The notes: generated by a model not told the origin, from the letters alone. 64,000 nucleotides of DNA from Ruditapes philippinarum (GCF_026571515.1 NW_026858743.1:1-64000), one strand, 5' to 3'. Positions 1 to 63,329 are shown, counted from the first letter of the stretch. Numbers and translations are program-made.

Positions 1-737
1 CAAGGGAAAAGTAATGGTGAATGCTCATATGGATGTCTTGATAACTTTGTAGGAAGGCAATGCAATCAATGCATACTTGGCAAGTATGGGTAATGCATGC
101 AACAGTAACTGTCCTGTCAATTGTGACAGGAACGGTTGCTTTAAAGAGTCCGGAAGTTGTATTAATTGCAATCAAAACTTTGCTGGAGAGACATGTGAAA
201 ACTGTGCTGTTGGTTTTCATGGTTCATTTTGCTCTGAGAGATGCCCAACTTATTGTTTGGACGATGTATGTGATAGAGATACAGGGACGTGCTCTGGTGG
301 CTGTTTCAACAATTATTCAGGTGACAGATGTTGTATAAGTAATAACAACTGTATCACATGTTTGTCAGATACAAGGTGTAAACAATGTAAGTCTGGATAC
401 TTCAATGACCAATGTGACAAACTATGTCCACAGAATTGTCTAAAGTCCTGTCATATCGAATCAGGTATATGTGACGGTTGCAACGGTAACTTTTATGGTG
501 ATAGTTGCAATTTTTCATGTGCCTCTACATGCAACATTCAAACAACAGGCGGAAGTTTATGTCAGCAAAGTAATGGAAAGTGCCTATATGGATGCGTAGA
601 TGGTTTCCATGGTTTACAATGTTCTGAGAAATGTTCTGTTTATTGCAACGATACAATTTGTAAGCAAGACAACGGCAAATGTACAAAAGGATGCAAAATG
701 AAAGTAAAAAATGACCCCATTTGCCCTCTGACATCAG
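1..737 (+). CDS. Receptor copy A: 3' part of the large EGF-like ectodomain exon (5' end outside window); apparent +1 frameshift at GGG 88-90
   Basis: Frame 1 reads QGKSNGECSYGCLDNFVGRQCNQCILGKYG then TAA (91-93); frame 2 continues GNACNSNCP...ICPLTS, colinear with copy B. Exon ends ACATCAG|GCAAGA, homologous to ACACCAG|GTAAGA in copy B. Confidence 0.85.
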
Positions 738-3273: not shown

Positions 3274-3333
3274 CAACAAAGAGCGATCCTGTGTTAAAGT
3301 CACCTGACTATGAGGATCTTGGAAGAGTTCAAG
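3274..3333 (+). CDS. Receptor copy A: cytoplasmic micro-exon 3 (ATKSDPVLKSPDYEDLGRVQ), first half of ITAM
   Basis: tttttcag|...AG|gtaatt, 60 nt, phase 1-1, conserved at 38693-38752. Confidence 0.88.
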
Positions 3334-3485: not shown

Positions 3486-3535
3486 TATCTGAGCATGAAT
3501 ATGGAGAAATTCGTCAAGACACTCGATATCATTGA
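3486..3535 (+). CDS. Receptor copy A: last coding exon (VSEHEYGEIRQDTRYH*), second half of ITAM
   Basis: Polypyrimidine tract then acaag| acceptor; in frame to TGA 3533-3535; conserved at 38903-38943. Confidence 0.82.
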
Positions 3536-7139: not shown

Positions 7140-7502
7140 GAGCAGTAGTAGTAGAAGTAGAAGTAGCAGTGGCAGCAGAAATAGCAGTAGCAGAAGTAGT
7201 AGTAGTAGAAGAAGTAGCAGTAATNNNNNNNNNNNNNNNNNNNNNNNNNNNNNNNNNNNNNNNNNNNNNNNNNNNNNNNNNNNNNNNNNNNNNNNNNNNN
7301 NNNNNNNNNNNNNNNNNNNNNNNNNNNNNNNNNNNNNNNNNNNNNNNNNNNNNNNNNNNNNNNNNNNNNNNNNNNNNNNNNNNNNNNNNNNNNNNNNNNN
7401 NNNNNNNNNNNNNNNNNNNNNNNNNNNNNNNNNNNNNNGTAGTATTAGTTGTAGCAGTCACAGAAGCAGTAGCAGAAGAAGTAGAAGCAGCAGCAGTTGC
7501 AG
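7140..7502. repeat. (GTA/GCA/GAA)n microsatellite broken by assembly gaps (N at 7225-7438 and 7503-7690)
   Basis: Seen directly; ungapped paralog at 45060-45190. Confidence 0.9.
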
Positions 7503-8603
7503 NNNNNNNNNNNNNNNNNNNNNNNNNNNNNNNNNNNNNNNNNNNNNNNNNNNNNNNNNNNNNNNNNNNNNNNNNNNNNNNNNNNNNNNNNNNNNNNNNN
7601 NNNNNNNNNNNNNNNNNNNNNNNNNNNNNNNNNNNNNNNNNNNNNNNNNNNNNNNNNNNNNNNNNNNNNNNNNNNNNNNNNNNNNNNNNNTAACACGTAG
7701 GAAAATTCTCAGATGACAGAATGAGTAAAACATATATTCTGTAATATTTGACAGTAATGAAATAGCTGTAAATTCACACAACATGCTCGACTGTCATAAG
7801 AAAACCATAACATAATTTTCTCATCAAACATGTTCTTATGACATACTTATTATAAAAATAATATTTCGGGAAATTAACGTTATTTTGAAATATCTTGCAG
7901 TGTTGTCAGTGTAAAGACTTAATTTCTTTTCATATCATTGTTTTTAAATTAAGTTATTTATAATATTATTTTACATAATATTATGTAAAAATAATATTAT
8001 GTGTTACGTTAGTATATCGTCTGCTAAATTTTACTTTACGCACGATAAGTCGTGTGGTATTTTTCACGTAACGGTTCATCGAGTAAATATTGCTAGGTGT
8101 ATAGCGCGAGGTGTGAATATGCGTTTAAACCGGTTATAAGTTGGTGGTGTATAGAATAAATGTATTGATTATAAAAATAAAAATTCAATCAAAATATAAG
8201 TAAAGTAATTGTCAATTTAGGTGGACGCTCCTGTGAATAGGATATTAGTTGAATTAAAATAGAAACATTTTAAGGGTTTACTATAAAAGTTAAAAAACAA
8301 AATTAAATTTAATTTTATAGGATTAATTATAAAATAAAATATATAGTTATACTAAGTTGAAAACTTTATTCCAAGACCACTTGTAAAAAATATTGTGTTA
8401 AAAAAAAAAAGCTCTAAGTAAGAGTATCATAAAGGTCTGTTTGTTGTTAAAGTTTAACTATTTAAATTGTATGAACAATAATATAACAAATTTTTATTTA
8501 ATGTGATTTAACTTTAAATAACGTCTTTCTATGGTTAAAAGTTGAAGTAACAACTAAGATATAAAATTCATTTTGTTTTACTTATAAGTGTTATCATTTA
8601 AGT

Positions 8604-24061: not shown

Positions 24062-25325
24062 TTTATGAGATAAAAAGAATATAAGATTTTTTCTCAAAAT
24101 TAAAAATTGTTTTTATACACTTTAAGTAATATAATTGTTCAACCGTTAAGATATGATAATAAATAATGATGGTAGTGCTTCTTGACCCTCTTATTATATA
24201 ACCCGCACACTTGAACAGATCTTTAAACTTCCTGCTTGTTAAACTAAGTTTTTTGTTGTTGTTTTTTTTTTGTTTCAACGATTGAGGTTAAATTGAATGA
24301 TATATTGAAGACGAGTTTACGTACATCGGTGTTTGGATTTTTTATAGATAATACCTATTTCTTTTTTTTTGGAACAATGAAGCTGAGTTTAAAACTGGTA
24401 CGTAGATACATTTAAAACAATAAATTTAACTTTTCATATATCTTTTTACATCATAAGTTTGGACAGAACTCGGCATACTTTTTTTGCCGTAAATGAAATG
24501 TTTTTATAGGGCTCATTTAAAAGAACTGCTGTTTGAAGGTATAAATTGAGACTGAACTATTTCAAGTATTGTTTTGTTGACAGTGTGTTTGTTTCTTTAG
24601 CTTATTTCAAGTCTATTCCATCTCTGTTCGCAGTTGATGAATACTTTACAACCAGAATTTATGGTATCGGTAATTCGTTATCTCTATCATCACAATGATT
24701 TCTATATATGGATTTTTAATTAGATTTAAATATTTCATTTCGTGAGAATTAACTAGTACATCTTCAGCCGATAAGTTCCGTCGTACTTGACTCTCGTACC
24801 GCGATATTTGTATATAATGATATACATGTATTAATATCTACATATTGTTTATCTAAAGGAACAACTACGTTTATTGATGTTAACATTGTCACATGCCATA
24901 ATGGTACCCTGCATTCATGAAAAACATCCTTACAGTCATCGGTGTATAGAATTATCACCATGTAACCCTGTTTCTTGCAGAAAGGGATATTTCGTACAGT
25001 TGAGCTAAACGCTATAAGCGTATAACTTCAGATTATGAAGTTGCAATTTCGCCTGATTTACTATTATTGTTTATCAATTAAACACTGTCTCTCCAGCTGT
25101 ATCTTTAATACAAGGAATCATCCTATTTATTTATTTATCTATTTATTAATTTATGTACAATTCACAAAATAAATAGTTCGTATTTGATCATATTAAATTG
25201 TACAAATGCATATAAAAAGTAATCAGAATTTTAGTTTAATCTTTATTAAGTTTCTTATCATCACAAGTCTTTCATCTCTTATTTTGTTATTAGCTATCAA
25301 GTAATATATACTTTAAATCCTCTAG

Positions 25326-29040: not shown

Positions 29041-29849
29041 GGCCGGGTTGCATTTGTACACCAAATATCATGAGGCTGTGATGTTACGAAAAAAAATTTC
29101 CATTGACCCATTAATGTCGAAAATTTAATTCAGTAGGTAAACAGGAAGTGGATTAGCTACACACCTAAAATCAAATCCCACCGTATGGGACCATGTGTCA
29201 ATGCTGTATGCCAAATATCAAGAGGCTGTGATTAGTAGTTTCTGAGAAAAATGTTACGAAAATTTCCTACCATTGACCATTAATGTGAACAGGAAGTGGA
29301 TGAGCGACAGACTTGAAATCGAATCCCACAGTATGGGACCATGTGTCAATGCTGCATGCCAAATATCAAGAGGCTGTGATAAGTAGTAACTGAGAAAACT
29401 GTTACGAAAATTTCCTACCATTGACCTTTAATGTCGAAAAATCTAACTAATTTAACTAAGTGGATAAACAGGAAGTGGATGAGCGACAGACCTTAAATCA
29501 AATCCAACGGTATGGGACAATGTGCCAATGCTGTATGCCAAATATCAAGAGACTGTGATACGTAGTTGTTGAGAAAACTGTTACGAAAATTTCCTACCAT
29601 TGACCATTAATGTCAAAAAATCTAACTAATTTAACTAAGTGGATAAACAGGAAGTGGATGAGGAAAGACCTGAAATCGAATCCCACGGTATGGGACCGTG
29701 TGTTAATGCTGTATACCAAATATCAAGAGGCTGTGAAACGTAGTTGTTGAGAAAACTGTTACGAATTTTTTTCCCCGCCGCCCACCGCCCGCCGCCCGAC
29801 ATTCACCATACTATAACCCGGGTTTGCACCTGTGCAACCCGGCCAAAAA
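29041..29849 (-). mobile_element. HINE-like element with ~179-bp tandem array
   Basis: SubTIRs GGCCGGGTTGCA (29041) / TGCAACCCGGCC (29833-29844), adjacent inverted repeat, CCGC microsatellite, four AGGAAGTGGA-containing units. Confidence 0.75.
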
Positions 29850-31114: not shown

Positions 31115-34100
31115 GTAGGTCTGGTAGTAGCATACTGTTAATAATGATCTCTTGGGCATATCATTTCTTTATCTTGTATGGGTGCGTCATACTCTCATTT
31201 TATTAACAATGTCACTGAATAAATCTTCACTTGAAAATTCCCTCGGAAATTTACATTGTATAACATCGCCTATTAAATTTATCCCTTCACATTTAGAGTT
31301 CATAAAATTAATAATTTGATAATTATTTTAATAATATGCCTTTATTTATTCAATATGTTGCAAACCAGAGTTATACTATGGTGAATGTCGGGCGGCTGGC
31401 GGACGGGAAAAATTTCGTTACATTTTTCTCTGCATTTACTTATCACTATGTAAGGGTATTAACGCAAAAATAAATTCCATCTTGCTTTCTTACGTTACAC
31501 CGTGCTTTCTAACTTGTACATCTTGTATTCTGACTTGTACATCTTGCATTCTGACTTGTACATCTTGCATTCTAACAGTTACATGTTGCTTTCTTACATG
31601 CTCATTATGCTTTCTGCTGTGTGCGTCTTGCTTAACTGTATGTTGATATCATTATTTAATGATCAATTATTATTCTTTTGTTGATCTAGTATACTAATTC
31701 AATAACTTAACCTGCAACTGTTTGTATTTGGGTTTATTTACTCAGATTGAATGACGAATGTCATAAGGTAGAATGACGTATAGCCGAAAGCCGAATGCAG
31801 CAAGCATAATACGACGCGACATCTGGTGTATTAATATGTGACACCCAAATTATGCTAACAGGTGGCGCTACAGTTATATTCTCGGTAAAGTCCGTATTGC
31901 GGTTCGGATTCAGTTTACCAAGTTACGTCCCTTTGTTTTAAAATTTCCATTTCCACTATGGAGCAAATAAGGTAAACATATATACAAAACGATTTAACCA
32001 ATTTTTGTATTTATTACTGAAACTGTGTGGGTCAAATTATATTTCCAGCTGACAATGACAAGTTGCACATTTCCAAATCAATGATTTTAGAATTATTTTT
32101 TTATCAACAAAATAATTATAAAATAGAACAGTTGTTCAAAGTGCTTGGGTATGGAAGGTGATCGATATTCCGGATACTCGTATATTTTCGGTAATTTCCG
32201 TATGGTTCCGTACATGTTTCCGAACTTGCGCCCTCTGTCGTAAAAAAGAGTGTAGTTTGCAACCTGCCTTGTTGTATTGCACACAGTGCGTGCTTCAATG
32301 TAATATTTATACATTAATAATCGATTAACTTAGGTTTCCTTTTTGTACACATTAAATGTAGACAGTTTACGATTATTATAATTAAACTGAACTTATTTTA
32401 GCATCAAACATAAAACATTAACGTAGACAGATTTGAAGTCAAATAACGAACGATCCATGCAATTTAAAGCAAAATGTGCAAGTCATAATGCAAGATGTGC
32501 AAGCCAGAATGCATTGTGTGCATGTCACAATGCAAAATGTTATAGTAAAAATCCAAGATGTACAAGTCAGAAAGCACAGTGTAACGTAAGAAGGCAAGAT
32601 ATAATTTTTGCGTTAATACCCTTCCATATATCACATAAATTTTCGACATTTATGGTCAATGGTAGGAAATTTTCGTAACAGTTTTCTCAGCAACTAGTTA
32701 TCACAGCCTTTTAATATATGACATACAGTATTGACACATGGTCACATACTGTGGGGTTCGATTCAGGTCTGTTGTTCATCCACTTCCAGTTAACTGGGAA
32801 ATTTTCTCAGCAACTTCTTAAAACAGCTTCTTGATATTTGGTATACACCATTAACATGTGGTTTCATACCTTGGGGTAGAAGTTCAGGTATGTTGCCCAT
32901 CCACTTCCTGTTTACCGACATAGTCAAATTTCGAGTGTATGGTACAAACGCTTTGTAGATCAGAATTGTGATTTTTATTTCATTAATTCAAATTTATGGT
33001 ATCCAATTTTCAGTTATTTTTATCTTCAAGTTATTTCTTCATTTGTAAATATGATAAACTGATATCAAAACTCTAGAATTTCAATAAATTACAAGTAAGG
33101 TAAATTAGAATCCCCAGACACACGTTTCATTACAATATAATATTTTCAATGAACAGATATGTCATTAGTTTATAAGTCTTAATTACAAATTCGATAATAC
33201 AATGATAAACATGAAGGTTAAAAACATCTAAACTTCAACGTGAGACGGATGCTTAGCAATTAGGTTAATTCCTCTCAACCCAGGGGTCGTAGGTACAAAC
33301 CCTTCTTGGGTCATAGTTATGTTATCATATCCTACACCATACCTGGCTTATTCTAGGAAGCGGTTTTATATTAGTTCAAATATGTACAAGGCCCTAAATA
33401 ATTTTTAAACTGAAGGGAAAGTAAACAAATGTTATAGATGTTATGAGGAAAATATGTTGAAGCTATTTACCATGGTTTATTATTTAATGTTGTTCGCATT
33501 GAAGAGGGATCAAATCAAAAGTCAAATGAATATATTTAGTTTCAATTTTTTAATTTAAAATAATTTACAGAACCTATTCAATTTTGGTAACTGTTTAAAA
33601 GATTGTAACAAACCACACTTGTTTCAATTCAAAGAATACCGTTACTTATTATCAATTTGTATGGCTTAACTAAACTTAGAAAAGAAGTACATGTAATGTT
33701 TTATTTGTGACGTTGCATAATATATATTTCAGATATTGTATGTATGGTGTATATGGTTAAATGTTAGCAACAACCTGGTAGAAGGAGGTAACTAAATTTA
33801 CATCAGTCTTTATTACAGATAATGTGGTATTTATCTTTGTTAATGGAAAACGTATTTATTCAAGTTAAAAGAAAATAAATATACATGCAGCACGAAAAGG
33901 TGTTGGTAGTGTTACTGAAATATTGTTTTTCTTTCCCGTTATAGAGATTGATGAACAATGTAAAGTAGGTTGTGTATGTTGTATAAATAGAAAATGTGCA
34001 CGGGGAAAATGGTTTTCTAACGAATGTACTCAAGGCTGTATTGATGGTCATAGATCTGCTCGATGTTATGAACTATGTACACACAATTGTACAAAATGCC

Positions 34101-37100
34101 CTGATCGTGCAGATACGTGTACCGCGTGCTATGATGGCTATTACCCCGGCCCTGCTAGAGACTGCACATCAAAGTGTTTACCCGGATGTAAAACATGCAC
34201 GTCAGGAACCACGTGTACATCATGCAAGGAGGGATATAATAATGACAATGGTCGAAATGATTGTAGTAATCGTTACTGTCCTGAAAACTGTAATTGCAAT
34301 AACGGTCAATGTGCATCATGTAAGGACGGATATTACGATACGACTAAAATATGTAATAGTTTATGTCCAGGTAACTGTGTCACGTGTACATCGAATACTA
34401 ATTGTGGATCGTGTAAGGATGGTTATTTTAACAAAAACCTCCCTTTGTTAAACGACTGTACATACAAATGTCGAGATAACTGTGCACGATGTTGGTCCTT
34501 TAATAGTTGCTTGCTTTGTAAAGGTGGTCTTTATGGATCGACGTGCGACAACAGTTGTTCAGTTGGTTGTATGTCAAACACTTGCGATATACTAACTGGA
34601 AGCTGTGCATGTTCTCCTTATTTTGCTGGAGTAAGATGTGACGAATGCATAACCGGAAAATATGGAAATGTTTGCGATCAACAATGTCCTGCAGGGTGTA
34701 AAGCTAACGTGTGTGAAAAAGATTCCGGAGATTGTACAGACGGATGTACTATAGACACGATCGTTGGGGATAAATGTGACCTTTGTTTAACAGGCTGGTA
34801 TGGACAATACTGTAACATATCTTGTCCTGTCGGCTGTAAAAATCAGCATTGCAAGAAAAGTAATGGGGAATGCTCAAATGGGTGTCTTGATAACTTTGTA
34901 GGAAGACATTGCATTCAATGCAAACCTAGCAAATATGGAGAATCATGCCAAAGTGAATGTCCAAATACCTGTGACGAGCAAGGTTGCTTGAAAGATTCCG
35001 GTCATTGTTTTAATTGCAATCACAACTTTGTTGGAGAGACATGTGATAGATGTCGTATTGGCTTTTTTGGTTCATTTTGTTCTGTGACATGCCCATCTAT
35101 TTGTTTATACGGTGTATGTGACAGATATACAGGAACGTGCTCTGATGGCTGTGTCTTCAATTATTCTGGTGACAAATGTTGTATAAATAATAACAACTGT
35201 ATTACATGTTTGTCAGATACTACGTGTAAACAATGTAAGCCTGGATACTTCAATGTCCAATGTGACAAAAAATGTCCTCGGAACTGTCTTAAGTCCTGTC
35301 ATATCGAGACAGGTCTTTGTGACGGTTGCATCGGTTACTTTTATGGTGATAGTTGTAATTTTTCATGTGCCTCTACATGCAAAATTCAAACAACAGGCGG
35401 AAGTTTATGTCAGCAAAGTAATGGAAAGTGCCTATATGGATGCGCAGATGGTTTCCACGGTTTACAATGTTCTGAGAAATGTTCTGTTTATTGCAACGAT
35501 ACACTTTGTGAGCAAGACGACGGCAAATGTACAAAAGGCTGCATAATAAAAGTAAAGAATGACCACATTTGCCCTCTGACACCAGGTAAGATAAATTCAA
35601 AACAGCTCGTTTTTATTCATAAATTCGTTATAAATATATGTTTTTCATTTTTAGTTGTGTTATGTGTTAATGTCATAATATGTCTTCTCTGTAAATTTGT
35701 AATGATGGTGATTATGTTGTTGCGCTGCTAATGATAATGAAAATAATGTTGATGATTATAAGAATAATTCTAACACGACTCGCATTTTTCCCTATTGAAC
35801 ATAGAAGAACAGAAAGTGTGTGTTATTATGCAACAGATGAACAGTTTGACGTTCTATATTTAGACATGTGACGTAATCATTATACACGCGACGTAACCAC
35901 TAAAAATCCGACGCGCTGAAAATAAGTACGGAAACAAATCAGGCGCAATTTTGCTTAGCTATCAAGTACGGCAACATTTATTTGTTGATGTCGTGTTAGA
36001 ATCGAAATAATATATCCAAATTAGTGATTTTATCGCTTGATAACATCACTGTTTGTCGTTCGGATGCGCATCATTATATCACTCGGGCTACGCCCTCGTG
36101 ATATAATTCCTCGCATCCGAACTCCAAACAGTGATGTTATTGAGCGATAAAATCACTGTTTGGGATATATTATTTCTTAAATTTAGTAACTTCGACAACA
36201 ATTATAGACGTTTTTTATGTATAGAAGAAAGTATGCAATGTATGAAAGCCAAATAAAATATAATTATATGTTATGTCTTGATAAATTTATAGAGATACAC
36301 AATGTATGTACTTTTTAATATGTCTTTTATGTAGCACCCTTCTTTTTATAATACGCTTAGATATTATTGTTGATTACCGGTGTATTTTTAGACACAAAGT
36401 CCTCAGAGCATTCAGTAAATACAGCTGCTATATCTCTTGGAACACTTCTTGCAGTGTCAGTTGTTGTTCACATCATATTTGTGGTTACGTTGATTCTCTG
36501 GAAATACCGAAAAAGGTAAAGATTGTGACAATTGTTCTCTTCTGCCTAGATTTTATAATGATATTTAGTGGTTTTATACCTAAATTGTCGGTAAATTAAA
36601 TTATAAACAAATATAATATCTTGGGTTTAAAAGTAGAGTTTGGTCTTTTATAAATAAGTAAAAAATACATTAACATTAAATGATTAGATTTAACAACTTA
36701 TTTATAGCAATTATTTGATATAACGGGCATATTTTTATTATTTCTAAAATATCAGAACAATTCGTCCTTAAACTAATTCGAACTCAATGTCATTCGTACC
36801 AATATTCGACCCATGATCAAAATCTCTTGGATGCTTGATTTCTTCAATTTCAGTAAACGATCATTAAATATAACTACATTATTGGGTATAAATAGAGCTC
36901 AAAGCTGCGGACAATCAGTCTGTGTCCAGCTGCCGAAGTGTCAACATCACAGAAATAATTTATTAACATTTCAGATCAATTACTTGGAATCTTGCACTAT
37001 TTACGAAGTTTATCAATTGCATCAATTAAACATTGCGTTAGGTGTAATTGTTAATACTAAAGTATTGAAAACTCGATATCCAAGTGGTTTAATAAATATA

Positions 37101-38943
37101 TTGAACAGCCTAAATAGTGTCACCCCTATTTTATATAAAGTTCAAGAAAAACTTATTATCTTTTATACTGTTATAAACACTTATTAATTAAACTTGAACT
37201 AATCATTTTATAATCATTTGTTACCAATCAACTGGCAAAGTAGCCATAAGAAAAATTATGTATATAACAGCTAGCCCGTTCACGTTACAAAATTTTGTAT
37301 TTATACAACTGAATAAACTTCCAATATAGAACACATAGAACATGAAAGTTGCAAAAGCTGTGCAATATATGAAATATGTCAAAATTCTAAACAAATTTCG
37401 CCTGTTTAGTTCCACTTTTCAAAAAGGAAAAAAAATAAAAATAAGTGAAGCTATTGCAATGACCCTCTTGACGCATCGCCGTCGGTGTCAGTGATGGCAT
37501 GGGTAAACCTTTTGTTTAGGTCCTTTTTCTCGGAAACTGTAAAAACTAGTATTCACTTCAAACTTACTTTTGTGCACTATATTGTCTTGTCAAGATAAAT
37601 ATATTACAACAGTTTTTGAGTACTGTATATTTATCAATGACAAATCAAATGATCTAAAAGAAATATGGCCAACATTTAATTTACATTACAGGGTCAATGA
37701 TTCTTACAAGACGAAAGGACCTGTATATGAAAACTCTCGTAAATATACATCTTATTTCTAACTAATAAATGATTTCTCTCATTATAAATTTTATGTTCTT
37801 CATATCCATTTTCAACATATTTATTTAAGCTCGATTGCGAAACAAGTTTTTTCACTTATATAAATCATTTTCGAGTCCTCTTCCTGAAACCAACCAGTAA
37901 TGGTGCCATATAAAGAAACGGATCCGTGTAGGGCTCGAAGACATGATCCGCGGATTGTGAAGCTGATTCCTTATCCATTAAGCCACCGCTCCCTTTAAAT
38001 TCCCATTTTGCACAGTCAGTCCTAAATTAAATGACTACCTATCGAGACCATAATATGCTTTTATCACGGAGTTTAAAAAAAAGAAATAATTTATATAAAA
38101 TACTAACAAAATTTATTATTCCAATGTTGTCAGGCTTTGAACTGGAATGTGGAAATTTGGTGAATGCTGGCAGTGCCAGCAAGCATGGAATTGCACAAGG
38201 TATTTCCTGTTGTGTTTCTAGACTTTTAATTGACTTATTCAGATCCTTCTTTACATTTCATTTAAAATATATGTAATTACTAACAATTTCTTTCGTACTT
38301 ATAATAACATAATACGCATTGAATATCATTATGGGTTGAACTTGTTAATATCCATTTAAATATTTTAATGGAAATGTAAATTCATGCTTTTTTGCATAAC
38401 TGATTCTGATGTTCTCATCAAATCTCTTTCATCTAGCCGTTGCATTATATTAAATTTAAAATGTTTTACAAGTCTTTTCATCATACTTGCAATACAAATG
38501 TACGGGTATTGTAAGTTGTCTTTGTTGATGTTGTATTTGTTTTTTTTTTTTTTTTAAAAATAGTAGCATGTATTCAAAGCGTAGCCTGTATATTTCAACC
38601 ATATCTTACAATTCGTTATGTAGTCATTAACTCGTAAAGTTGTGTGTAAGTATTAAAAGAATATCAGTTATATAGAAAGGTTTATTTTTCAGCAACAAAG
38701 AGCGACACTGTATTAAGGTCACCTGACTATGAGGATCTTGGAAGAGTTCAAGGTAATTGTGAATTAATTGTTCAGATTATCGTATTGTAAACACCTTAGT
38801 TATTTAGTGTCAATATATAAACTGTTTATATAAACCTTTTGTCTACATTTAAGTTGTTTCATGACTTTGAAATATTTTTCCTTTCCTTTCGTTTTTTTAC
38901 AGTATCTGAGCATGAATATGGAGAAATTCGTCCAGACACTTGA
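31100..38943 (+). CDS. Receptor copy B, spliced gene (~682 aa): MEGF10/Draper/SREC-like multiple-EGF type-I membrane receptor with cytoplasmic ITAM; exons 31100-31114, 33733-33787, 33945-35585, 36392-36515, 37692-37738, 38134-38199, 38693-38752, 38903-38943
   Basis: All introns GT-AG with compatible phases; total 2049 nt open to TGA; signal peptide, Cys-rich repeats, TM, Tyr-motif tail. Confidence 0.85.
31359..32951 (+). mobile_element. Second HINE copy (family of 29041-29849), split by a nested MITE
   Basis: 31359-31446 and 32629-32951 are reverse complements of the head and repeat units of the 29 kb element. Confidence 0.75.
31447..32628. mobile_element. Non-autonomous TIR element, TAT..ATA termini, 6-bp TSD (IS3EU-like)
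   Basis: TATGTAAGGGTATTAACGCAAAAA ... TTTTTGCGTTAATACCCTTCCATA; ~170-bp inverted arms with 21-bp subrepeats; TSD TATCAC at 31441-31446 and 32629-32634. Confidence 0.75.
33733..33787 (+). CDS. Copy B signal-peptide exon (ILYVWCIWLNVSNNLVEG)
   Basis: tttcag|...GAG|gtaact, 55 nt, phase 0-1, hydrophobic with a V-x-G cleavage-like end. Confidence 0.75.
33945..35585 (+). CDS. Copy B single ectodomain exon: furin-like CxxC and EGF/laminin-EGF-like repeats
   Basis: Within ORF 33923-35731; repeated C..G.YG..C...C...C motifs; acceptor gttatag|, donor CAG|gtaaga; 1641 nt, phase 1-1. Confidence 0.93.
35759..36180. mobile_element. Palindromic non-autonomous element in copy B intron (Crypton-like, tentative)
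   Basis: ATTCTAACACGAC / GTCGTGTTAGAAT inverted pair plus a ~78-bp-arm palindrome (36004-36176) centred on CACTCGGGCTACGCCCTCGTG; ends TTAA; absent from copy A. Confidence 0.6.
36392..36515 (+). CDS. Copy B transmembrane exon
   Basis: 124 nt; DTKSSEHSVNTAAISLGTLLAVSVVVHIIFVVTLILWKYRKR. Confidence 0.9.
37692..37738 (+). CDS. Copy B cytoplasmic micro-exon 1 (VNDSYKTKGPVYENS)
   Basis: 47 nt, ttacag| ... CTC|gtaaat. Confidence 0.85.
38134..38199 (+). CDS. Copy B cytoplasmic micro-exon 2 (RFELECGNLVNAGSASKHGIAQ)
   Basis: 66 nt, tgtcag| ... AG|gtattt. Confidence 0.85.
38693..38752 (+). CDS. Copy B cytoplasmic micro-exon 3 (ATKSDTVLRSPDYEDLGRVQ)
   Basis: 60 nt, tttttcag| ... AG|gtaatt. Confidence 0.88.
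38903..38943 (+). CDS. Copy B last coding exon (VSEHEYGEIRPDT*)
   Basis: tttttacag| then in frame to TGA 38941-38943. Confidence 0.87.
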
Positions 38944-51700: not shown

Positions 51701-53183
51701 AAAGAAATGTTTTGAAACTTGAACCACATAAACGTGTGATATATAATTTTTCTATTGAAATACCTGAGATACACAACAATAAAACCGCTATTTTTTGTAC
51801 ATTGCGATGTCTGAATTTACGATATAAATCATTATATGAAAACACTTCCAACTCTCTTTCACTTGAATTACTAGTAATAAGTAGAAATGAAAGGCAAAAA
51901 GCGAAACAAGAGTACTTAAGCTAGAATAATGTATTGAGTTGCATATCTCTATATAAATAAAGATATATTTGTATGTACATGGTCATTTTGTTCTATACAT
52001 GCGATGAACGCTGTCAAAAATCTATATTTTACACGTTCAATGACCATAGTATCAGTATGCAATTTACATGTGAATAAATCCAGGAAATATTACATTGATT
52101 TAAACCTTTACTATTTCAGATTATTGAGACAAATGTCTGAAAATGATAGATCAGATTATTTCTTTCCTCTTATAGGAAATAGGTTATTCATGAATTAATC
52201 TTAAGTCTCTTTTTTATATATAGAATCAGCATTTGCGGTATATAATAAAGCTCCGTATTGATCTGGTTCTAAAATGTTCCCGTACATAAGTCATATACGG
52301 ACTCATAAACGATCCCGTACATTTCCGTTTTTCAAATTTCCCGCATCTTATCCGCATATCAATGATACATGTATACGGGATTCCGTATACTTCCGTATAT
52401 CCATATATGTTTTGCATTGCGCGTCAGTGACATAAATACATTAATTTTCATGCCATAACAGTATACTCTTAAGTTTAAAGGGTGTCAAGCCATTTTTAAT
52501 AACATAACAAATATAATATTTTGGTGCTATTATATATAGTGTTTTAAATATTTCTTGTATGTGCCATTCGCTCTTAATGAGATAAACATTTCTTTTTCCA
52601 AAAATTTAAACTGGCTTTAATACACTTGAAGTTAAATGTATTTCAATAAATATTAGTTCATCAAGTATAAATAATGCCAATTTTATTCAGTGTAGAAACA
52701 TAATACCAGATAAAATCGTTCAACCGTTAAGATATGTAAATAAGCTATTGTGGTAGAGCTTCTTGTAACTCTTATTATAAATAAAACCCTCACAATTTAA
52801 CAGATCTATAAACTTCCTGATTTGGAAAATATGTGTTTTTTTTCAACGATTGAGGTAACATTGAATGTTTAATTCATGTCGAGTTCACGTACATCGGTGC
52901 TGGGATTTGTTGGGATAAACGATACATATTCCTTTATTTGGAAGAATGAAGTGGAGTTTAAATTTGGTACGTAGATACATTTAAAAGAATAAATTTATCT
53001 TTTATGTCGTTTTAAAAGTTAAGTTTGCATTGAATTCAACATACTTTTTCTGCATTAAATGACATGTTTTCATAGCGCGCATATGAATATAAAAGTAGTT
53101 TGAAGGTATTTGTAGATATTAAATTGTGATAAGTTGTTGACTTAACCATGACAAGTATTGTTTTCTTGCATTGTTTTTTATTA

Positions 53184-53700: not shown

Positions 53701-55129
53701 AACAAGAGGGCCATGATGGCCCTGAAGTCGCTCACCTGTATGTAGGCCCCCAGAGCGGGGCCAGTTTAAATCCCAAGGCTTTTATTTGAACAAACTTTGA
53801 AGACACTCACTAGAAGATGTTCCATGCTTAATATCTAAACTCTAGCTATTTGTTTTTGTTTTTTTTTTTCAAAGAAGATTTTTAAGTTTTTGCTATACAC
53901 ATATAAGGAAAATTAATGTCCCCAGGGCTGGGCCAATTTTGATCCTAGGGCTTTTATTTGAACAAACTTTGAAGACACTAACTTGAAGATGTTTCATGCT
54001 TAATATCTAAACTCTAGCTATTTGGGTTTTTTCAAAGATTTTTTAAGTTTTTGCTATACACATAAATAAAATCAATAACCCCCGGGGCGGGGCCAATTTT
54101 GACCCAATGGCTTTTATTTGAACAAACTTTGTAGACACTCACTAGAAGATGTTTCATGTTTAGTATCTAAACTCTAGCTATTTGGGTTTTTTCTAAGAAG
54201 ATTTTTTTTTAAAGTTTTTGCAATACACATATAAGGAAAATCAATGACCCCCGGGGCAGGGCCAATTTTGACCCCAGGGTTCTTATTTGAACAAATTTGG
54301 AAGACACCCTTTAGAACATCTTTCATGCTAAATATCATAGCTCTAGCTCTTTTGGTTCTTTAAAAGAAGATTTTTTAAGTTTTTACTAAATGCATATAGG
54401 GAAAATCAATGACCCCCTGGGGCGGGGCCAATTTTGACCCCAGGGCTTTTATTTGAACAAACTTGATAGACACTCATTAGAAGATGTTTCATGCTAAATT
54501 TCTTAGCTCTAGCTCTTTGGGTTCTTTAAAAGAAGATTTTATAAGTTTTTACTATATGCATATAGGGAAAATCAATGACCCCCTGGGGCCGGGCCAATTT
54601 TGACCCCAGGGCTTTAATTTGAACAAACTTGGTAGATACCCATTAGAAGATGTTTCATGCTAAATATCTTAGCTCTTGCTTTATGGGTTCTTTAAGAGAA
54701 GATTTTTTAAGTTTTTACTATATGCATATAAGGAAATTCAATGACCCCCGGGGCGGGGCCAATTTTGACCCCAGGGCTTTTATTTGAACCAACTTGATAG
54801 ACACTCACTAAAAGATGTTTCATGCCAAATATCTAAGCTCTACCTCTTTGGATCTTTTAAAAGAAGATATTTTAAGTTTTTTCTATCGGTTGCCATGGCA
54901 ACCAGAGTTCTTCATGGAATGGAATTCTTTGAACAACTTTGTTAAGGCTGCACACAAGGAACATCCCTGTGAAGTTTCATTATGATCTGCCTTGTGGTTT
55001 CAGAGAAGATGTCGTTTTAAAAGTGTGAACGGACAACGGACGACGTACGACGGACGACGAACGACAGACGACGGACGATGAGTGATCCTAATAGTTCACC
55101 CTGAGCATATGCTCAGGTGAGCTAAAAAA
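53701..55129 (-). mobile_element. Complete HINE (non-autonomous Helentron) with ~7 x ~166-bp tandem array
   Basis: Hairpin GGGCCATGATGGCCC (53708-53722), subTIRs GCTCACCTG / CAGGTGAGC, terminal inverted repeat, GGAC/GAC microsatellite, no TSD; empty site at ~24978. Confidence 0.88.
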
Positions 55130-62206: not shown

Positions 62207-63329
62207 TTTTGTGCCCCCACTATAAGGGAGCATTTAGATTTACCCTTGTCCGTCCGTCCGTCCGTCCATCCGTTCTCTTTTTGTGTCGCACGTAGCTCAA
62301 GAAGTAATTGACCTAGAGTCATGAAACCTTACAGGAATGTTAATCAGCATGTGTAGTTGTGCACCTGGGTATCTTCGTGTGGATATTTTTAGTATTATTT
62401 TAGAGTAATTGCCCTTGACTTAGTGAAAACTTGCAATTTTCAACTTGTGTCAAACGTAACTAAAAAAGTATTTGACATAAAGTCATGAAACCTTACAAGA
62501 ATGTTGCTCAGCATGTGTAGTTGTGCACATGGGTATTGCCCTTGACTCAGTAAAAAATTCCAACTTGTGTCGCACGTAACGGAAAAAATATTTGACCTAG
62601 TGTCATAAATCCTTACAGGAATGTTGATCAGCATGTGTTGTTGTGCACCTGGGTATTTTCGTGTGGATATTTTTAGTTTTGAAGAGTTATTGCCCTTGAC
62701 TTAGTGACAATTTCCAATTTTCAACTTGTTTCGCACATAACTAAAAAAGTATTTGACCTAGAGTCACGAAACCTTACAAGAATTTTGCTCAGCATGTGTA
62801 GTTGTGCACCTGGGTATTTTTGTGTGGATATATTTAGTATTTTTAGAGTTATTGCCCTTGACGTAGTAAAAATTTGCAATTTTCAACTTGTGTAGCACGT
62901 AACTCAAAACATATTTGACCTACAGCCATGAAACCTTACAGGAATGTTGATTAGCATGTGTTGTTGTGCACCTGGGTATTTTTGTGTGGATATGTTTAGT
63001 ATGTTTAGAGTTATTGCCCTTGACTTAGTAAAAATGTACAATAGTTAACTTGTTTTGCATGTAACTCAAAAAGTATTTGACCTGTAGGCCTGAAAGTTTA
63101 CAAGAATGTTGGTCAGCATGTGTACTTATGCACCTTGGGGTTTTCTTGTGGATTTATTCAGTATTCGTAGTATTTGCCCTCTACTAAATAAAATATTTTT
63201 AGTTTTTCAACTTAAAAGTAGTAGTAGTAAAAGTAGCCAAAAACAATATTTCACCTGGAGACATAAGAATAAGATTGACAAATCGTTGGAGTATGGGGGC
63301 ACCAGTGTCCTATGGACACATTTCTAGTT
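62207..63329 (+). mobile_element. Complete HINE with ~6 x ~162-bp tandem array
   Basis: TTTT-GTGCCCCC subTIR, (GTCC)n at 62248-62272, tandem units, GGGGGCAC subTIR (63295-63302), hairpin GTGTCC-TAT-GGACAC, CTAG-TT end. Confidence 0.85.

Follow-up and report, generated by a model that had tools for sequence, protein, structure and literature searches.

Tandem MEGF10/SCARF1-like receptors of the clam Ruditapes philippinarum with an ITAM-like tail encoded by micro-exons

A 64,000-nucleotide stretch of AT-rich eukaryotic DNA from Ruditapes philippinarum (contig C7230:1-64000, hereafter the window; assembly size 1.41 Gb) carries a tandemly duplicated receptor gene, copies A and B, whose cytoplasmic tail is encoded by micro-exons. 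We favour, with somewhat better than even confidence, the reading that these are tandem type I receptors of a family expanded in venerid clams and that they signal through a tail resembling an ITAM (immunoreceptor tyrosine-based activation motif). The predicted receptor consists of a signal peptide, a SCARF1/MEGF10-like rod of laminin-type epidermal growth factor (EGF) modules encoded by a single large exon, one transmembrane (TM) helix and a micro-exon tail. The tail would comprise approximately 95 residues from four phase-1 micro-exons, with a membrane-proximal (N/G)PxY-x-N followed by DYEDL-x9-YGEI, which fits the broad ITAM pattern.

The copy B model was read exon by exon and compared with the RefSeq proteins of copy A and of paralogs. 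All exons given for either copy lie on the plus strand. The first coding exon of copy B (24377-24397; MKLSLKL, donor GTACGT) supplies residues 1-7 of RefSeq protein P0001 (XP_060600687.1), and the start of the gene, originally placed near 33.9 kb, is corrected to 24377. A second exon at 33733-33787, with an AG acceptor and a GT donor, encodes the remainder of the signal peptide and is 100% identical to residues 8-25 of P0001. The ectodomain exon (33945-35585; 1641 nt, phase 1-1) encodes a Cys-rich rod of laminin-type EGF-like modules and matches P0001 at 100%, as does the stop-free Cys-rich stretch at 33869-35728. The TM and juxtamembrane exon (36392-36515) ends in ..WKYRK.

Four micro-exons follow in copy B. 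The first (37692-37738, 47 nt) encodes VNDSYKTKGPVYENS and ends in the donor CTC/GTAAAT, without G at -1. The second (38134-38199, 66 nt) encodes FELECGNLVNAGSASKHGIAQ and is homologous to residues in paralogs P0004 and P0231. The third (38693-38752, 60 nt) encodes TKSDTVLRSPDYEDLGRVQ, containing the first tyrosine module ..SPDYEDLGRVQ, and the last coding segment (38903-38943, 41 nt) encodes SEHEYGEIRPDT, containing the second tyrosine module, and the stop codon TGA; both are supported by conservation among paralogs. The exons have AG/GT borders and, from the ectodomain exon onward, each junction cuts a codon after its first base. Read across the junctions the tail is ..WKYRK / R VNDSYKTKGPVYENS / R FELECGNLVNAGSASKHGIAQ / A TKSDTVLRSPDYEDLGRVQ / V SEHEYGEIRPDT and stop. 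The motif is YEDL-x9-YGEI, with an intron five residues past YEDL (38752/38903), and KGPVYENS lies nearer the membrane. This translation confirms the exons, frames and splice signals of the original prediction, which had described four coding exons of 41-66 nt (here 47, 66, 60 and 41 nt) and a YxxL-x9-YxxI split by an intron, together with a YEN motif.

The same arrangement is found in copy A. Its TM exon (1137-1260) is 100% identical to P0105 (XP_060600689.1) and is followed by the KGPVYENS micro-exon (2195-2241, donor CAG/GTAAAT), a 66-nt micro-exon (2761-2826), the micro-exon with YEDL (3274-3333) and a last coding segment (3486-3535, acceptor AAG) encoding SEHEYGEIRQDTRYH and a stop three codons later than that of copy B. 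The nucleotides are the same in the two copies over both tyrosine modules, as had been claimed for the ITAM codons. RefSeq splices the copy A tail at exactly these junctions, giving the 122-aa 'uncharacterized protein LOC132754109' (P0105). This protein maps at 100% to the first four copy A tail exons, TM exon included (tblastn); the fifth exon is too short for tblastn, and translation of the window gives the same VSEHEYGEIRQDTRYH ending.

A genome-wide search of the tail unit found at least 27 tail loci, 18 of them intact, that carry the exon 3-intron-exon 4 unit, and conservation was counted over those 18. All 18 retain D-Y-E-D-L-G-R-V-Q / V-S-E-H-E-Y-G-E-I, and both tyrosines are present in 18/18. 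The residue at +3 of the first module is Leu in 17 loci and Ile in 1, that of the second is Ile in 18/18, and neighbouring positions are variable. Mean pairwise identity is 0.88 for exon 3, 0.83 for exon 4 and 0.90-0.91 for the motif cores, compared to 0.68-0.69 for introns and the 3' untranslated region. The Mercenaria protein P0007 (XP_053379932.1) has YEDI-x9-YGHI and retains the x9 spacing and the SEHEYG core, and the deep Ruditapes paralog P0019, whose ectodomain is 41% identical, has a true NPVY followed by YEKI-x9-YGHI. GPVY, EPAY or GPIY takes the place of NPxY in the two copies and their close paralogs; NPVY occurs in the deep paralogs P0019 and P0077. Invariance of the tyrosines and +3 residues, the contrast between exons and introns, and retention across genera make purifying selection on the micro-exons and the motif a well supported conclusion from these alignments. 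The paralog count and the tyrosine conservation that had been proposed as a check are both in agreement with the predicted family.

RefSeq carries the spliced tail for copy A and for paralogs (XP_060600689.1, XP_060556947.1, XP_060601719.1, XP_060578507.1), and in paralogs P0003, P0004 and P0231 it splices the same tail junctions. The prediction that annotation would give only a 'MEGF10-like' label was correct for the name, P0001 being called 'multiple epidermal growth factor-like domains protein 10'; it was not correct for the tail exons, which are not invisible to annotation since RefSeq models them for copy A and several paralogs. Tail-only protein searches with the P0004 and P0007 tails against 5.8 billion sequences returned very close paralogs only, because short regions cannot reach significance at that database size. 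An ESM Atlas search with the tail gave nothing usable.

A candidate kinase partner was located on another contig. Exons for an SH2 domain, ankyrin repeats (Pfam, 7e-12), a further SH2 domain and a tyrosine kinase lie in this order on one strand of C560:170000-188300. ZAP-70 and SYK are the closest matches of the N-terminal SH2, and PYK2, SYK and ZAP-70 those of the kinase exon; by architecture the predicted gene is a Shark-type kinase, built like Shark of Drosophila. The tail of Draper carries an NPxY as well as an ITAM, defined there as YxxI/L-x6-12-YxxI/L, and it is the ITAM to which Shark binds (PMC6219719). In the oyster, an ITAM-bearing immunoglobulin (Ig) receptor reportedly recruits CgSyk (PMC6994640). 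Given this report and the gene of Shark architecture, a mechanism in which an ITAM engages tandem SH2 domains is plausible in bivalves by analogy. Clustering of the clam receptor by ligand would lead to phosphorylation of both tyrosines by a Src-family kinase, and the doubly phosphorylated motif would then dock the tandem SH2 domains of the clam Shark-type kinase, comparable to Draper and Shark. As a side branch, pYEN may recruit a Grb2-like adaptor.

The favoured reading has to be weighed against several observations that speak against it, some of which concern the two gene copies. In P0001, the RefSeq model of copy B, the reading frame continues past the exon-2 donor and stops after ..YENSRKYTSYF, leaving out the motif. 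Position -1 of this donor is C and position +5 is A; copy B and its closest relative, the C15783 locus, end the 47-nt exon in C, and almost all other paralogs end it in G. Losing G-1 and G+5 together weakens U1 pairing at a donor. No full-tail isoform of copy B was found in the tail search, among proteins 0.55-1.75 times the length of P0004. It is possible, though we consider it doubtful, that copy B makes no motif, the weakened donor leading to read-through and a truncated tail on what would be a tail-less or decoy receptor or an incipient pseudogene, with downstream micro-exons that are intact merely since the change is recent. This explanation concerns copy B and not the family. It is opposed by the C15783 locus, where the same C/GT donor is spliced by RefSeq to give the full motif tail (P0231 = XP_060578507.1; ..YENSRIELECG..DYEDLGRVQVSEHEYGEIRPDT), by the downstream exons of copy B, which are all open with intact AG/GT borders, and by the near identity of copy B to the C15783 locus, which sets in at approximately ectodomain residue 490, takes in the TM and lasts until the alignment stops at ..YENSR. 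C15783 was considered as an allelic haplotig of copy B, but P0001 and P0231 are only 82% identical overall in a mosaic pattern, with approximately 78% identity over the first 480 residues and near identity from approximately residue 490 (window 34937-35585). Gene conversion affecting the 3' block would account for the mosaic, as would hypervariable alleles; the two would be either paralogs whose 3' block has been homogenised or alleles that have diverged strongly. In copy A, the 3' part of the ectodomain exon (1-737, GC donor at 738-739) is cut by the contig start and frameshifted by a +1 insertion near 88-91 that leads to an in-frame TAA. The one-base insertion (window 80-95) is relative to copy B and the third copy and may be a sequencing error in a G run. 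The contig start inside the ectodomain exon, the insertion with its TAA and the GC donor mean that this assembly does not hold copy A as an intact gene. Across the family, approximately 8 paralog tails are broken or lack a tyrosine. A chance motif of no function in a low-constraint tail is extremely improbable. One YxxL/I-x6-12-YxxL/I per short tail would be expected in a few per cent of cases (0.70 per 61 tails in shuffles), and this explanation is effectively refuted by tyrosines and +3 residues invariant in 18 paralogs, by the exon/intron contrast and by the occurrence of the motif across genera.

Further points against the favoured reading concern what the two tyrosines do. The clam motif is off the classical ITAM consensus, with a spacer of 9 and not 7 and Ser at -3, and the Pfam ITAM model PF02189 gave no match at E<=1 to P0105, P0004 or P0007. 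Both modules also match YxxPhi sorting signals. An alternative that we judge unlikely, although it has a real share of the probability, is that the tyrosine motifs act separately with no bidentate ITAM, either in AP-2/PTB endocytic sorting on a scavenger or endocytic receptor or as separate docking sites for single-SH2 proteins (Src-family kinases, Crk, Grb2). It would suit an ectodomain fold closest to that of the scavenger receptor SCARF1. The wider family bears on the question directly. A full HMMER scan with P0004 as the query found 1744 relatives, and YxxL/I-x6-12-YxxL/I was present in 11 of the 61 with a recognisable TM helix and a short tail, compared to 0.70 in composition-preserving shuffles, of which 0/2000 reached 11. 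In P0104, which is among these 11, the motif falls inside a kinase domain and so does not count as a genuine tail motif. Mercenaria, Mya, Mactra, Crassostrea and Argopecten supply the carriers, those of Argopecten being named SCARF1-like. In Crassostrea they form a cluster under the name 'protein draper', for which the complete 635 aa are encoded by one Logan contig of 2086 nt that is hard to account for except as cDNA. Single YxxL/I motifs are strongly enriched in this wider family (42/59, compared to 18.9 in shuffles), and ITAM-range spacing (6-12) is enriched only modestly, in 10 of the 26 tails with at least 2 motifs against 5.6 for random placement (approximately 2-fold, P=0.026). Many relatives have two motifs 13-30 residues apart. 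The fixed x9 spacing of the Ruditapes loci says little on its own, since the entire intervening GRVQVSEHE is conserved. Several points favour joint action of the two tyrosines. The x9 spacing is retained between Ruditapes and Mercenaria and in P0019 even though the first half of the spacer differs (RNVQD, TSLHG), acidic residues precede both tyrosines as in kinase substrates, a tandem-SH2 kinase of the Shark type is encoded in the genome, and Draper, the closest functional analogue, uses such a tyrosine pair (PMC6219719). Signalling through an ITAM-like tail is on these grounds the reading that we prefer. The original proposal of activating immune or phagocytic receptors is borne out in part, by structure, by conservation, by the expansion of the family and by the kinase gene; the immune or phagocytic role is a putative one.

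The ectodomain was analyzed at the level of domains, fold and codons. Pfam scans of the ectodomain exon, P0004, P0005 and P0007 found no EMI domain, and in P0001 the signal peptide directly abuts the Cys-rich exon; the predicted lack of an EMI domain and of a canonical NPxY holds for the clade of copies A and B on these scans and on the tail reads. Pfam EGF_laminin scored below threshold (18.9-19.5 bits, cut-off 21). An AlphaFold2 model of the membrane-proximal 346 residues, calculated from a 24-row alignment, had a mean pLDDT of 89.7. Its closest solved fold is the N-terminal fragment of human SCARF1 (8hna; Foldseek E 1.7e-07, identity approximately 22%), followed by the laminin-type EGF (LE) modules of laminin, perlecan and netrin, with E in the range 1e-7 to 1e-5. 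These matches make the term multi-EGF receptor right at the level of the fold, as predicted. The N-terminal half of the ectodomain has CxxC-rich furin/VSP-like repeats. A codon analysis of five ectodomain exons gave an overall omega of 0.33-0.45; it rose to 0.75 over the first 60 codons and to 0.51 over codons 331-390, which is no proof of positive selection in these exons.

The same type of ectodomain is also joined to receptor tyrosine phosphatases. The ectodomain of Ruditapes P0005 (XP_060597743.1) is 72-74% identical to that of copy B, a closeness equal to that among ITAM-type paralogs. Pairwise dS comes to 0.37-0.40 both between P0005 and ITAM-type genes and within the ITAM type. The TM segment of P0005 differs from that of the ITAM-type receptors. 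Protein tyrosine phosphatase (PTP) exons lie downstream in C6435:83023-96500 (P0005) and in C11227:138000-151000, with a WPD loop (..TAWPDKGVP..) and an exon that ends in ..VHC. The exon after it can be aligned to Mercenaria P0020 from SAGVGRTG onward, which would be the continuation of HCxxGxxR. Mercenaria P0016, P0020 and P0233 (XP_053379931.1, with D1 and D2) are full receptor phosphatases with the same type of ectodomain, P0020 matches PF00102 at 5.9e-70, and at least 30 of the top representatives are receptor tyrosine phosphatases. The TM-plus-phosphatase module is conserved between Ruditapes and Mercenaria. Copies A and B have no PTP exons. In Mercenaria the receptor phosphatase XP_053379931.1 and the ITAM-type XP_053379932.1 (P0007) have consecutive accessions on the same 76.4-Mb scaffold and may be neighbouring genes.

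In the ectodomain tree the PTP-type receptors are scattered, each with non-PTP partners of its own species or subfamily, and P0005 nests in the Ruditapes ITAM-type clade (100/100). Monophyly of PTP-type ectodomains was rejected by the approximately unbiased (AU) test (delta lnL 403, p-AU 7e-5), the PTP-type group having been defined after the tree was seen. Because the histories of ectodomain and tail are discordant, the single phase-1 ectodomain exon appears to have moved between tail classes or to have been homogenised across them, a pattern such as paired receptor families show. Partners bearing an immunoreceptor tyrosine-based inhibitory motif (ITIM) had been suggested. No (I/V/L/S)xYxx(I/V/L) was evident in the tails examined, where the -2 residues are Pro and His, and phosphatase-fused sister receptors were found instead. 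A tentative proposal, held with less than even confidence, is an invertebrate paired-receptor system in which an exchangeable ectodomain exon is placed either on the ITAM-like tail (activating, through the Shark-type kinase) or on a TM segment with a directly fused tandem PTP (inhibitory or threshold-setting). Within such a system the tandem arrays would evolve by birth-and-death and gene conversion, and copies lacking the ITAM or the tail may be decoys. That the phosphatase arm opposes the tyrosine-motif arm is speculation.

The tail unit occurs four times on contig C7230, at 3261, 38680, 76750 and 103322, and self-comparison of the window gave a repeat unit of approximately 35 kb. At least 60 ectodomain-exon loci were found in the R. 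philippinarum genome in addition to the at least 27 tail loci, and every listed tail locus sits downstream of an ectodomain exon of the same receptor family. The tandem duplication and family expansion proposed for this locus are borne out by these counts, as is the expected name of MEGF10 in automatic annotation. The third tandem copy begins in the window with its first coding exon (52946-52966, plus strand; MKWSLNL) and has its ectodomain exon outside the window at C7230:72615. Elsewhere in the genome, a sub-cluster of at least 6 copies at C183:260000-386000 has shorter ectodomain exons and tails that lack one or both tyrosines (for example ..SEHECRQKN) or contain stops, and some of these copies are annotated as proteins (P0006, P0011).

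Other features of the window are repeats and gaps. Satellite-like arrays lie at 53747-54886 (166-bp units, 6.9 copies) and 62281-63165 (approximately 162 bp, at least 3.7 copies). Tandem repeats of 148-179 bp at 29140-29765 and 32640-32930, with inverted copies approximately 3 kb away, flank a low-complexity Cys/Thr-coding stretch at 31335-32675. Two runs of N (7225-7438 and 7503-7690), either assembly gaps or masking, fall within the block downstream in copy A that is duplicated.

Adaptive immunity is absent from bivalves, yet their receptor repertoires are very large and evolve fast, with a signalling logic that is for the most part obscure. Dozens of SCARF1/MEGF10-like receptors with a conserved Draper-style tyrosine pair, together with a Shark-type kinase, offer a testable route from recognition to phagocyte activation in a commercial clam. 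What is new is the joining of the same ectodomain to a phosphatase module in sister genes and the discordant histories of ectodomain and tail. If the paired-receptor proposal is true, activating and inhibitory pairs arose independently outside vertebrates, and the clam system would be convergent with KIR, Ly49 and SIRP, a phosphatase fusion taking the place of the ITIM. Surveys of motifs based on proteomes will undercount such receptors, because micro-exon tails are modelled inconsistently (XP_060600687.1 without the tail; XP_060578507.1 and XP_060600689.1 with it). In full-text literature searches no paper came up that describes MEGF10-like receptors of molluscs with ITAM-like tails or with phosphatase partners. 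The suggestion of an undescribed system holds to the extent that no paper on the family was found, but not for the ITAM-Syk axis, already published for the oyster Ig receptor (PMC6994640).

The receptor family is best placed as a variant of the Draper/MEGF10/SCARF kind. Like Draper, CED-1, MEGF10 and Jedi-1, the clam receptors are type I proteins in which atypical or laminin-type EGF modules form a rod, a single TM helix follows, and the tail is short, with an NPxY-type motif ahead of YxxI/L-x6-12-YxxI/L, although a true NPVY is found in the clam only in deep paralogs. The clam genome also encodes the type of kinase that partners Draper (SH2-Ank-SH2-kinase), and the RefSeq names of the clam proteins are MEGF10, CED-1-like or draper-like. 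In contrast to Draper and MEGF10, the clam family is without EMI, has GPVY for NPxY in the clade of copies A and B and has undergone massive tandem expansion with many pseudogenes. Because EMI is absent and NPxY is degenerate in its clade, the clam receptor is not a strict member of the Draper/MEGF10 group. SCARF1 (SREC-I) is the best structural match of the modelled half of the ectodomain, and some scallop relatives with ITAM-like tails are named SCARF1-like. The SCARF1 tail is long and Ser/Pro-rich and is not known to carry an ITAM.

Among bivalve receptors, CgIgR of the Pacific oyster is likewise a TM receptor with its own cytoplasmic ITAM, and has been reported to recruit a tandem-SH2 kinase, CgSyk, and to promote haemocyte phagocytosis (PMC6994640). 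CgIgR differs in having five Ig domains and a single gene, compared to the EGF modules and tandem family of the clam, and CgSyk is SH2-SH2-kinase whereas the clam C560 locus has an ankyrin exon between the SH2 exons (PMC6994640). In the classical vertebrate ITAM subunits (CD3, CD79, FcRgamma, DAP12) the motif is D/E/N-xx-YxxL/I-x7-YxxL/I. Their first tyrosine module is interrupted by an exon boundary, and an acidic residue lies in the TM (PMC4536121). In the clam the boundary falls five residues after YEDL and the TM has no acidic residue. The spacer of 9, the Ser at -3 and the boundary after the first module point to convergence and not homology with the vertebrate ITAM. The label ITAM accordingly holds in the broad Draper-type sense, YxxI/L-x6-12-YxxI/L, and does not hold by the classical vertebrate consensus, the exon boundary or the Pfam model.

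The candidate paired system resembles the vertebrate paired receptors (KIR, Ly49, SIRP, PILR, FcR-like) in placing closely related ectodomains on signalling modules that would be opposite in effect. Further likenesses to vertebrate paired receptors and ITAM adaptors are the tandem arrays, their turnover by birth and death, and an ITAM spread over two exons. The candidate inhibitory arm of the clam is a fused receptor tyrosine phosphatase and not an ITIM, and, in contrast to vertebrate ITAM adaptors, the clam motif is carried on the receptor chain itself, whose TM lacks a charged residue that could pair with an adaptor.

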